Assembly (NCBI GenBank): GCA_037447605.1
Contig: CM074819.1
Location: forward strand, 496,001 to 560,000
DNA: 64,000 bases
Direction: 5' to 3'
DNA from: Zygnema circumcarinatum SAG 698-1b
Taxonomy: Eukaryota; Plantae; Zygnematophyceae
Positions 27,953 to 47,027 of the stretch are shown piece after piece. Position 1 is the stretch's first letter; every line of letters begins with the position of its first letter. Position numbers and translations under genes: made by a program. Below the pieces are notes generated by a model that worked only from the letters and a program-made list of their open reading frames with translations, was not told the origin of the DNA and did no database searches.

Positions 27953-30756
27953 TCACTCTCTCCTCTCGTACTGCCCAAAGAAACTATTCACATGTGACGC
28001 CTCAATTTCACCGTAATTGAACGGAATGTCTGCAAAATCCGTAATTCTCAAACTGTCGCCTCCCCCGAGAAGCGCTAAAGGGTCGAAATTCGACCCATTG
28101 TCCGACCTAAAATTAGGGCAAATGATAGAGCTATTCTTTGATCCTAGAATAGAAAACTCGTCTGAATTACTAGTAGGGCAATTTCCGCTAGAGCTGGACT
28201 GTACGGAAGAAGGGACATGCATGTACGGCAGCCATGGCTGCTCCATCTCCGAAACCCGAACTGAGCCTTCCTGAGCCTCTGAGAGAGGGGAGAGAGAGGA
28301 GAGAGGGGCGACGGAAGAGGGAGGAGAGTGGGGGGAGAGCGAGGAGCGAGGACAGAGAGGAGACTGGGAGGAGAGAGAGGAGAGAGGGGAGAGAGAGGAG
28401 AGAGTGGAGAAATTGAGGAGAGAGAGAGGGAAGGGAGAGGTTTCAGTAGCCATAACAAGCACGCTCAAGGCTTCCAAGTTGCTGGAATCCATGAACTCCT
28501 CTACCTCCTCCGAATTCTGCACTCCCCCTCTCTCCCTCTCTGCTCCCTCTCCCTCCCTTTCCTCCATAACCTGTGGCTGAGACATCCTCTGTATCCATGC
28601 TGAAGACTCAACGGAATTCAGTTCTGTTCCATAACTGTGCTCCGTCGCACATAAATCCCTGTTGGGAGCTTCCAGAACCTCTGAAATTGAAGTGTCTAAC
28701 TCCGAAATTTGGCCCTCTCTCACAGTCAACCCTCCTCTCTCTCCCTCCAAAAGGGAACTTGAAGGAGAAGGTAAGCTTCCTTCTTGATATCCATGTCTTC
28801 CGTGGCTAAAGGGAACAATACTCCCCATCGAAAAATCGGCCACTTGGGAGCTTCCTCCAGTCGGCATAGATTCCATAGGCTTCAAATTCCCAAAAGCCCC
28901 ATTTCCCATATGGGGTTCAGGGACCTGCATTGTACGGATATGTAGAGAGGGTCCGTACGGGTGTACGGATGTTGGATGTTGATGTTGGTTTTGAGGGGGG
29001 TTAGAAAAAGCGAAACCCTGATTTGGGTTTTGCAGAGCCACTGCAGCTGCTTGACTAAGGAGAAGCTTTGTGGGTCTTTTTGAGGAAAGGAGGGGAAATA
29101 TGAGCTGGTGATTGTGCTTTTCCGGATACTGAATGTGAAGCTTGAGGGGCGCATCTTTGTGGAATTCCACAGTGCGTTTTCCGGGACACTTGGCCTCCTT
29201 GAAGAGACTGCACTTGTAGTAGTATCTGGAAAAGGAAAGGGGGGAAAGAAGAGAGAGGAGAGGAGGGAGAAGGGGGCAGACAGAGAGTGGAAGAGAGAGA
29301 GAGAGAGAGAGAGAGAGAGAGAGAGAGAGAGAGAGAGAGAGAGAGGGGGAGAGGCAGATGGAAATACGGGGGTAGTGTGAGAATAAGGGGGAGGATAAAG
29401 GGTCTCGCTCACTCGCTCGCTTCGTAATTCTCTCTGCCCTCCCTCGTCCCTCCCTCTCTCCATCCCTTCCTCCGTCGCTCCGTCCGTACGTCCGTATTTC
29501 CCTCCCTTCCCCCTCATCCCCCCACCTCGCCCATCTCCCCCCCCCCCTACCACTTTCCCTGCCCTTCCTACCTCTCCGTCCCTTCCACCCTCCCTCACCT
29601 ACTCCCTCCCTCCCCCTCTTCCATCGTTCTCCCTCCCTCCCTACCCTAACTAGTAATCCCTCCCTCCATCCCTCCCCTCCATCCCTCCTTTCCCTCCCTC
29701 CCCTCCCTCCCTCCCTCCCTCCCTCTCTTCTATCGTTCTCCCTCCCTCCCTACCCTAACTAGTAATCCCTCCCTCCATCCCTCCCTCCATCCCTCCCTCC
29801 CTTCCTCCCTCCCTCCCTCCCTCCCTCCCTCCCCTCTTCCATCGTTCTCCCTCCCTCCCTACCCTAACTAGTAATCCCTCCCTCCATCCCTCCCCTCCAT
29901 CCCTCCCTCCCTTCCTCCCTCCCTCCTTCCCTCCCTCCCTCACCTGATGATGGAGGTCCCCTTGATGTGCTTTTGTCCGTACTTCTGCCAAAGGCACCCA
30001 TCGTTCGGAATGTCCAGTCGCCGCCTCGCCCTCCTTCTGCTTCCACACCATTACACAAACAAATAATACTTCAGTTCTCTAACACATATGTGTGTGTGTG
30101 TGTGTGTGTGTGTGTTATATCGTTCTACTTCAGCCAGTTTCATAAACAAAACTTAACACAACACTAGACTCAAACCCTACAACCCCTACAAATCCTAAAC
30201 CCTTCCAACCCACGGAACCATTCAACTCCTTCACTTCTTCTTCTCCAAGAAAGGTAGCAACCCTAAAACACCAATTTGCTCAACGCCTTGTCTCTCCTCT
30301 CACTCCGCTCTCTCCTCTCTCCTCTTTCTTCACTCTCCTCTCTCACCTCTCTCCCCTCTCTGTCCTCTCTCTCCTCCCTCTCCTCTCTCACCACTCTCCT
30401 CTCTCCTCTCTATCCTCTCGCCTCTCTCGCCTCCCTCACATCTCTCCCCTCTTCCCTTTCTCCCCTCTCTCTCCTTTCTCTCCTCTCTCCTCTCTCTCCT
30501 CTCGTCTCTCTCCCGTCGCTCCCCTCTCTCCCCACTCTCCCCTCTCTCTCCTCTCTCTCCTCTCCCTCTCCCTCTCCCTCTCCCTCTCTCCTCACCTTTT
30601 CGGAGCGGCTCCATGCAGCTCCTTCGCTGCCTCCTCTTCCGTTTTCTCCGTTCCGTCGCTCTCCACGCTGTCCCCTCCGCTCGTTTCGTCCAGTTCTACG
30701 GATTCCGGCTGTGCGCCGACCTGCCCGATGTGCTCCGTTGGGCTGTCCGCCTCCAT
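27953..30756 (-). CDS. WRKY: Atypical WRKY transcription factor A (WQKYGQK; C-X7-C-X23-H-X-H)
   Basis: Exons 30756-30596, 30036-29944, 29225-27953 with phase-2 introns. Domain: LDIPNDGCLWQKYGQKHIKGTSIIR|YYYKCSLFKEAKCPGKRTVEFHKDAPLKLHIQYPEKHNH. The intron lies in the Arg codon as in R-type WRKY introns. Confidence 0.92.
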
Positions 30757-45069: not shown

Positions 45070-47027
45070 ATGGAGCCGGCGGACTATTTGGAGCCGTTGG
45101 AGCTGACGGACATTCAGGTCGAATTCGATGAATTTTGGCGACACATGGACGGAAGGAACGGAACTGAAACGGAACTGGTCGAGGCCATGGAAACGGACGA
45201 GAAGGGCGGGGAAAGCGGCGGGACTTCGAGCCGCGAGAGCGGCGGAACGACTCACAGCGGAGAGGAGGAGGAGGGCCACTCAATACCCAAAAAGTGAGTG
45301 ACCATTATTTAAGAAGAATTTTTAATTTACATTTTTTTTTTTTTTTCGGTGTAGGACAAGGTTCAAGAAAGATATTTTTTATTGATTGTTTTTTTTTTGT
45401 GTAATGGTGTGGAAGCAGAAGGAGAGCGAGGCGACGTCTGGACATTCCGAACGATGGGTGCCTTTGGCAGAAGTACGGACAAAAGCACATCAAGGGGACC
45501 TCCATCATCAGGTGAGGGAGGGAGGGAGGGAGGGATAGCTACTTAGGGACGGAGGGAGGGAGGGGGGGGGAGGGAGAGAGGGAGGGAGGGAGGGAGGGGA
45601 GGGAGGGAGGGAGGGGAGGGATGGAGGGGAGGGATGGAGGAAGGGAGATTGGGAGGGAAAAAGAGAGAGACAGCGAGCGAAATTGAGAGAGAGAGAGAAG
45701 AGAAAAAGAAAAGAGACCGTGTTCTGACTCTTTCTTTCACTCCTTCCCTCTCTGCAGATACTACTACAAGTGCAGCCTATTTAAGGAGGCAAAGTGCCCT
45801 GGAAAACGGACCGTTGAATACGACACAGAGAACCCGCAGAAGCTTCACATTCGATACCCTGAGGGTCACTCCCACCCCTTAGCACCTCCCAATGCCTCCA
45901 AAAAGGTCGCGAGAATGATCCTCTCTCAAGCAGGCCAGACCTCCCTCCGCCCTACCTCTCCCTCTACCTCTCCCTCCCACTCTCTCTCACCTTCTCGCTC
46001 CCGTCCCCCTCCTCCTTCCTCCCTCCCCTCTCCCACTACCCCCTCGGGCTGCTCTCATCAGCACTCCCACAATGCTCCGCTTCAGACGGTTGCCGAATTG
46101 GGTCCTTCAAAAACTGGTTTTTTGGAGCAAACCCATTTGAGGCCTCAAGTTTTTAACGCGGCGAAACCTCTTCCGAAGGTAGAACCCTACGAAAATCTCC
46201 GAGAAACTGCCCAAACGATGGAAAAAACCGAGTTTTTGGGGTCCAACTCAGTTTTTAGGGCTGTGAGAGAGGAGGCACAATCTGCCGCCATGGGTTCGAC
46301 TATGAGCTCTCTCCCATCCAGCAATGGCTGCAATAATAGGTTCACAAAGAGTCGGAGCTTTCCAGAATCTTCGATCTCCGAGATGGGTCCATCCAACGGT
46401 CGAAAACCAAGCGGTTTGGATGCGGAGTTTGACACTTTAGCATGGGTGAGGGAGCAGCTTGAAGTTCCGGAGACTCCCAGATCCACATTTTCTGACACAG
46501 CTGCGGATCCACTTACTAGAATTGACCCAGTTCAACGTTCTCTGGAGAGATCAAGATCCACCGGACTCTTCCCCGAAACGATGACTTCTGGAAATTTTGG
46601 AACAAGGGGAATGACGGATTCGAACCGCCTGTCTCAAGCAGCTATAGAAGCCTTGAGAATTCTCGCCATGTCAACATCAAATGCAGCGAATTCTCCCTAC
46701 AATCTCACTCCTCTCTCTACCCTCTCCTCTCTTTCCACTCTCTCCTCACTCTCCGCTCTCTCCTCCTCTCTCTCCACTCTCTCCGCTCTCTCCGCTCTCT
46801 CGTCCATCTCCTCCCTCTCTACCTCCAGGAGAAGCTATTATGCTGAGCCTCCCACTTCCCAGCCATGGCTGCCATACATGCAAGCTTCCAATACTGCAAG
46901 GGGGGAAGCCATGAATATGAGCTCTGAGATCAACCCTTTGGCTCTTCTTGGGGGAGGAGACTCCTTGACAGTTGCCGACTTTGTAGATATTCCTCTCAAC
47001 TTCTTCAACTATAGGCCTTCACAGTGA
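45070..47027 (+). CDS. WRKY: Atypical WRKY transcription factor C (WQKYGQK; C-X7-C-X23-H-X-H)
   Basis: Exons 45070-45293, 45419-45511, 45758-47027 with phase-2 introns. Domain: WQKYGQKHIKGTSIIR|YYYKCSLFKEAKCPGKRTVEYDTENPQKLHIRYPEGHSH. Confidence 0.92.

Follow-up and report, generated by a model that had tools for sequence, protein, structure and literature searches.

WRKY domains that resemble those described here have so far been reported piece by piece. The heptad WQKYGQK is known as a sporadic variant in tomato, barley, Ginkgo (GbWRKY33, group IIb) and others, where it occurs in isolated members of ordinary groups, the finger C-X7-C-X23-H-X-H is listed in a few angiosperm surveys, and DGCx directly ahead of the heptad has been named as characteristic of group IIb (Rinerson 2015, PMC4350883). 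Klebsormidium, the only charophyte genome then available, was found to hold groups I and IIb only, and the origin of group III was left open (Rinerson 2015, PMC4350883). A literature search on WRKY subgroups in Zygnematophyceae found no paper. The present analysis concerns three WRKY genes (A, B and C) of the zygnematophyte Zygnema circumcarinatum SAG 698-1b, which lie in a window of 64,000 nucleotides (GenBank assembly GCA_037447605.1, contig CM074819.1, positions 496,001 to 560,000 of the forward strand; coordinates below are those of the window, read 5' to 3'). The trio shows the same single R-to-Q change as the tomato, barley and Ginkgo proteins but differs from them in forming a cluster, and in adding to this change the X7 finger with an H-X-H ending; each of its oddities is known singly elsewhere. 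With a probability of roughly 0.6, the trio consists of old paralogues from a lineage-specific subfamily of single-domain WRKY proteins, with a IId-like mosaic domain that is predicted to bind a TGAC core and with a second exon that has been homogenised among them.

The three genes are real and intact. A six-frame scan of the window located DGCLWQKYGQK at 29970-29990 (-), 38347-38367 (+), 39583-39603 (+) and 45465-45485 (+), and C-X7-C-X23-H-X-H at 29108-29212 (-), 39776-39880 (+), 41079-41183 (+) and 45771-45875 (+), whereas it detected no canonical WRKYGQK domain; each motif appears four times in the raw sequence because gene B is present twice in the assembly. Gene A is on the minus strand and stands head-to-head with genes B and C, which follow each other in tandem on the plus strand. 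The spliced models are complete open reading frames (ORFs) of 508, 513 and 528 amino acids for A, B and C respectively, with the same three coding exons and one WRKY domain each, and their parts are as follows.

30596..30756, minus strand: gene A coding exon 1 from the ORF model, with ATG at 30756, GT donor at 30595 and an acidic N-terminus
29944..30036, minus strand: gene A exon 2, with the RRRARRR basic patch and the DGCLWQKYGQKHIKGTSII strand
29226..29943, minus strand: gene A intron of R-type and phase 2, taken up by (GGGA)n and a 109-nucleotide tandem repeat
27953..29225, minus strand: gene A exon 3, with the zinc-finger half (29108-29212), the S/L/P-rich tail, the PWLPY...DPLALLGGGDSL motif and the stop codon
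39184..39392, plus strand: gene B coding exon 1, in-frame copy
39537..39629, plus strand: gene B exon 2, with the WQKYGQK strand; the next intron spans the gap 39639-39648
41066..42305, plus strand: gene B exon 3, gap-free, with the finger at 41079-41183 and the stop codon at 42303-42305
44452..44501, plus strand: gene C 5' untranslated region (UTR) exon, in RNA contigs of three runs, followed by a GT..AG intron of 426 nucleotides (44502-44927)
44928..45293, plus strand: gene C exon with the remaining 5' UTR and coding exon 1 (ATG at 45070; coding 45070-45293)
45419..45511, plus strand: gene C exon 2, with the WQKYGQK strand; the junction 45293/45419 is present in four RNA runs
45758..47027, plus strand: gene C exon 3, uninterrupted, with the finger at 45771-45875 and the stop codon at 47025-47027

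In all three genes the second intron splits an Arg codon (AG/A or AG/G) five residues before the first Cys of the finger, which is the R-type (PR-type) phase-2 position of the PR-intron WRKY lineages I-C, IIc, IId, IIe and III. Gene C is found in spliced contigs from four public RNA runs of the same organism, belonging to three studies, and these contigs confirm all of its splice sites: one of them (run X7) links exons 1, 2 and 3, joining 45506 to 45755 with two letters between, which corresponds to the junction 45511/45758, and another (run X3) spans 45755-47030 unbroken, so that exon 3 is continuous. The acceptor of gene A exon 2 and the CAG acceptor that RNA verifies in gene C have the same sequence context. 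The three spliced domains match the Pfam family WRKY (PF03106) with 60.7, 60.7 and 61.4 bits (cut-off 21; E about 1e-16) and cover profile positions 1-59 of 59 in every case, while FLYWCH remained far under its threshold in the same scan. The preliminary description of this DNA, which had noted three WRKY genes in this arrangement, the Gln in the heptad, the unusual finger and the retained R-type intron, is borne out on each of these points by the intact ORFs, the PF03106 matches, the six-frame scan, the split Arg codon of A, B and C and the gene C junctions in RNA.

The proteins share one architecture. The N-termini before the domain are 49-70 residues long and acidic (15-21 Asp/Glu), and a K/R-R-R-A-R-R-R basic patch is probably the nuclear localisation signal. 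The heptad reads WQKYGQK in A, B and C, a one-residue variant that is known from accepted WRKY members; the Pro that follows it is replaced by His, and the Pro of the PR pair is also replaced (..SIIR) with its Arg kept. The four zinc ligands are present in all three, in the order C-X7-C-X23-H-X-H with HSH or HNH at the end. The domain lies near the N-terminus and is followed by an S/L/P-rich tail of about 370 residues. At the end of this tail the trio has a common motif, PWLPY[ML] followed by [DN]PLALLGGG[DN]SL..[DE]F.D (28000-28110, 42240-42290 and 46860-47000), which can also be rendered as PWLPY...DPLALLGGGDSL..DF; it had neither a Pfam match nor a match in any database search, and may be an interaction or activation motif.

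The affinity of the domain to described groups was assessed by scoring solved WRKY domains from the PDB against the exact window translations of the two domain halves, with a profile of A, B and C as the query for the finger half; the finger halves of the three genes, searched singly, gave the same picture as the profile. The scores were as follows.

AtWRKY11 (8IEX), group IId: finger half 24.8 bits, heptad half 24.1 bits
GhWRKY17 (9M0K), group IId: finger half 23.6 bits, heptad half 23.6 bits
WRKY18, group IIa: finger half 14.8 bits, heptad half not listed
WRKY1-C, group I: finger half 11.8 bits, heptad half 25.5 bits
WRKY4-C, group I: finger half not listed, heptad half 22.6 bits
OsWRKY45, group III: finger half not listed, heptad half 15.4 bits
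RRS1: finger half not listed, heptad half 13.2 bits

Group IId scores best on the finger half and is level with WRKY1-C on the heptad half. The trio has in common with IId the strings DIPxD before the heptad and K.IKG[ST] after it, YYKCS.F[RK] and CP..[KR].VE, in addition to the H-X-H ending and the X23 spacing, and IId genes carry a PR-type intron. It differs from IId, which has WRKYGQK followed by Pro, by its WQKYGQK followed by His and by the lack of Pro in PR, and its C-X7-C aligns with the C-X5-C of IId as an insertion of two residues in a IId-like CS.F[RK]..C spacer. With group IIb, represented by Klebsormidium kfl00189 and by a metagenome gene, the trio shares DGCx right before the heptad, and the metagenome gene has exactly DGCLW; on the other hand, IIb has C-X5-C, QVQR and a VQR-type intron, whereas the trio has X7, KRTVE and a PR-type intron with none inside the finger. 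The Cys before the heptad, which the preliminary description had presented as an added novelty, loses that status, since DGCx is a group IIb hallmark (PMC4350883) and a canonical DGCLWRKYGQK occurs in the metagenome gene. As far as the sequences allow a judgement, the domain combines IIb, IId and III hallmarks in a mosaic; its nearest solved relatives are those of IId, and it matches none of the described groups cleanly.

The preliminary description had also raised a group III precursor state, a reading in which the C-X7-C-X23 of the trio is homologous to that of group III and marks its stem lineage before the last His became Cys; if true, group III would predate the split between zygnematophytes and land plants. 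The trio does share with OsWRKY45 (PDB 6IR8) the C-X7-C-X23 spacing, the single domain and the PR-type intron, its domain lies near the N-terminus with a long C-terminal tail, and the origin of group III is left open in the literature (Rinerson 2015). However, the spacing was the sole basis of the proposal, and a change of two residues in spacing can arise independently. The group III finger ends in H-X-C (C2HC) and not in H-X-H, and similarity to OsWRKY45 is low: together with RRS1 it ranks at the bottom for the heptad half, neither of the two appears in the list for the finger half, and IId domains lead in both rankings (WRKY1-C reaching 25.5 bits on the heptad half). Additionally, the spacer starts like that of AtWRKY11 (CS.F[RK]), and the two surplus residues align as an insertion. 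The longer spacer of the trio looks like a mimic of group III spacing, that is, a modified IId-type finger rather than a group III ancestor, and descent from a group III stem is doubtful.

Regarding DNA binding, experiments on NtWRKY9 or AtWRKY1 showed that it is abolished when W, K, Y or the final K of the heptad is exchanged for Ala; with changes of R, G or Q, as with R313E, it is weaker but persists (PMC1851648). A, B and C preserve every residue that is essential in these proteins: W, K, Y and the final K in the heptad, Arg in the PR pair and the basic position in YY[RK]C. The heptad Arg of GhWRKY17 touches a phosphate as well as bases 5' of TGAC, and hardly any binding is left in either the R250A or the P256A mutant (PMC12905487); the trio has Gln and His at these two positions. 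An intact C2H2 WRKY fold would make the three proteins sequence-specific nuclear factors, which are predicted to bind TGAC-core (W-box-like) DNA through the kept W, K, Y, G, Q and K of the heptad together with the Arg and the Tyr-Tyr-Lys of the next strand. Without the heptad Arg, and with His where the Pro would follow, the base 5' of TGAC would be read less strongly or differently, and the expected outcome would be TGAC-core binding with lower affinity or with an altered preference for the 5' flank. An altered DNA specificity, as the preliminary description had suggested, is plausible on these grounds.

A stronger version holds that the R-to-Q and P-to-H changes remove W-box binding altogether, and that the proteins use a different site or act as non-binding partners or competitors of canonical WRKY proteins. 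The near elimination of binding by either GhWRKY17 substitution speaks for it, as do the replaced Pro of PR (..SIIR) and a Pfam score of about 60 bits, which denotes a divergent domain. Nevertheless, a change of the Arg merely reduces binding in other WRKY proteins, all binding-essential residues and the four zinc ligands are kept, and the DNA-contacting strands are under strong purifying selection; a lost or reassigned target is unlikely.

The history of the three genes differs between exons. In the finger half (45 codons), comparisons among A, B and C give a proportion of synonymous differences (pS) of 0.64-0.88, which is saturated, and a proportion of nonsynonymous differences (pN) of 0.08-0.26, so that the genes are old paralogues kept under purifying selection. 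Over the first 20 codons of exon 3 the residues agree except for two changes in B, although 9-11 synonymous differences occur there. In exon 2, pS is 0.05-0.15, all differences fall within the first six codons, and the last 74 nucleotides are identical in all three genes: 29944-30017 (-), 39556-39629 (+) and 45438-45511 (+). This identity extends into the intron by 16-19 nucleotides in A, C and the first copy of B, and by at least 9 nucleotides in the second copy of B, up to the gap at 39639. The simplest and most likely cause would be short-tract gene conversion beside the (GGGA)n intron; a constraint at the nucleotide level is the alternative cause of the exon 2 identity. Since exon 2 is homogenised, the Gln does not count as seen three times independently, and the R-to-Q change in the trio may go back to one event that gene conversion copied from gene to gene, in place of three retentions.

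A different account of the same data combines a finger that was widened before the His-to-Cys switch and before land plants, an R-to-Q change that altered DNA preference, and an exon 2 that is invariant at the nucleotide level without conversion, for instance through small-RNA control. As a whole, this account is quite unlikely.

Several points weigh against the reading of A, B and C as an old IId-like subfamily with TGAC-core binding and a converted exon 2. IId proteins carry a HARF motif and a calmodulin-binding C-motif N-terminal to the domain, and a regular-expression scan of A, B and C found neither. The near-N-terminal position of the domain and the long low-complexity tail are also unlike the placement of the domain in IId proteins, which differs from this position. 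The affinity to IId was read from about a dozen solved domains with half-domain scores of 15-25 bits. The models of genes A and B come from ORFs and homology, the RNA support being that of gene C. DNA binding could be lost, given the effects of R250A and P256A in GhWRKY17, and the identical tract of exon 2 has the same 5' edge in all pairs, which is somewhat odd for independent conversions.

The assembly of the cluster deserves attention, as gene B is a single gene written twice. A self-comparison of the window aligned 38423-39638 with 37189-38412 at 99.84% identity and 39649-40941 with 40952-42244 at 100%; the two redundant pieces are small contigs with 10-N gaps exactly at their bounds, from which, together with the near or full identity with their neighbours, the doubling of a single gene follows. 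The pieces concerned are these.

37189..38412, plus strand: left contig end before the gap 38413-38422, the other copy of the gene B upstream region, exon 1 and exon 2
39649..40941, plus strand: redundant contig between two gaps, with the rest of gene B intron 2 and most of exon 3

The breaks fall in the (GGGA)n that opens the WRKY intron of gene B or resume at the same point of that intron, a pattern typical of redundant contigs that the scaffolder set in tandem and not of a true duplication of the gene. Gaps 38413-38422 and 39639-39648 are within the (GGGA)n start of this intron, gap 40942-40951 cuts the redundant copy of exon 3 only, the second copy (41066-42305) being free of gaps, and gaps 31181-31190 and 31730-31739 are in (TCCC)n upstream of gene A, where they leave its coding sequence untouched. 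Exon 2 of gene B ends with a normal donor (CAG/GTGAGG) ahead of the gap 39639-39648, and exon 3 follows a normal acceptor. Within a (GAG)n run, the copy of exon 1 in 37189-38412 is two nucleotides shorter owing to a deletion at 38139 that would put it out of frame; the second copy was taken as correct because it is in frame and aligns with gene C. This two-nucleotide indel between the copies (38139 versus 39373) is an assembly or sequencing error or an allelic difference. That the whole cluster is an assembly duplication or a set of decaying copies is very improbable, for in spite of the five N gaps in the region, the doubled gene B and the frameshift in one copy of its exon 1, most synonymous sites of exon 3 differ among A, B and C, which are therefore not assembly copies of each other, all three ORFs are intact, and spliced RNA contigs of gene C come from four runs that belong to three studies.

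Repeats are abundant in this region. On the sense strand, (GGGA)n or (GAGAGG)n fills introns and upstream DNA (29437-29941, 30291-30593, 31096-31180 and 45514-45658), which places G-quadruplex-type sequence directly after a donor site, and all five regional assembly gaps lie in or at such runs. Long (AG)n/(CT)n microsatellites come right after the stop codons of gene B (42315-42701) and gene C (47037-47182).

The sequences upstream of the three genes have a further feature in common. Over the whole window TTGACY is depleted, with 40 sites where 67 would be expected, and 13 of the 40 are gathered in three short patches, one ahead of each gene; their coordinates, with the share of Markov simulations that reach the same count, are given below.

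32334..32995: W-box cluster with five TTGACY, likely in the gene A promoter (0.4% of simulations reach five)
36248..36593: W-box cluster with five TTGACC in 346 bp, upstream of gene B (0 of 1000 simulations reach five)
43756..44160: three W-boxes, upstream of the gene C 5' UTR exon (2.8% of simulations reach three)

The position of these clusters suggests auto- or cross-regulation by WRKY factors, and the three genes would then be under WRKY control, possibly by the trio itself. Such auto- and cross-regulation is usual for WRKY genes of land plants. CACGTG, a G-box or an element similar to the abscisic acid-responsive element (ABRE), also occurs beside each W-box patch, with four sites at 33134-33739, others at 36418 and 36508, and again at 43256-43948. 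The long intergenic ORFs had no Pfam match, Rfam returned nothing in 27000-48000, and a search of the window found no second site complementary to exon 2.

Searches for relatives of the trio were negative. Exon 3 of gene C found no relative among 5.8 billion clusters, either whole, where the word step was swamped by low-complexity words, or as residues 1-70; a profile search with the three finger halves and an exhaustive phmmer search of exon 3 against 1.84 billion protein representatives likewise gave none. The proteins of the window itself are absent from the protein libraries too, so the genome is apparently not covered by them and these blanks are weak evidence of absence. In the Joint Genome Institute (JGI) metagenomes, a degenerate DNA pattern for DGCLW[Q/R/K..]KYGQK returned no relative and one unrelated canonical gene of IIa/b type. 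This is the metagenome gene mentioned above (L001, 1417-1449, minus strand); its contig has 29% GC and belongs to an unrelated organism, and its DGCLWRKYGQK...CPVRKQV exon is followed by an intron at the V position. The ESM Atlas returned generic WRKY clusters only, with scores under 0.8. The idea of a lineage-specific subfamily, already put forward in the preliminary description, is supported by the lack of relatives in the protein libraries and the JGI metagenomes, within the limit that the protein libraries apparently do not include this genome.

The trio remains a divergent member of a very well-known family, and none of the variations that make it up is without precedent. In land plants WRKY factors form a major family in the response to stress, and the origins of the WRKY groups in their algal relatives are unsettled. 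An algal clade that mixes hallmarks of groups IIb, IId and III with a PR-type intron would be a test case for the order in which these hallmarks originated, and the trio would offer a natural experiment on the contribution of the heptad Arg to the reading of the W-box.

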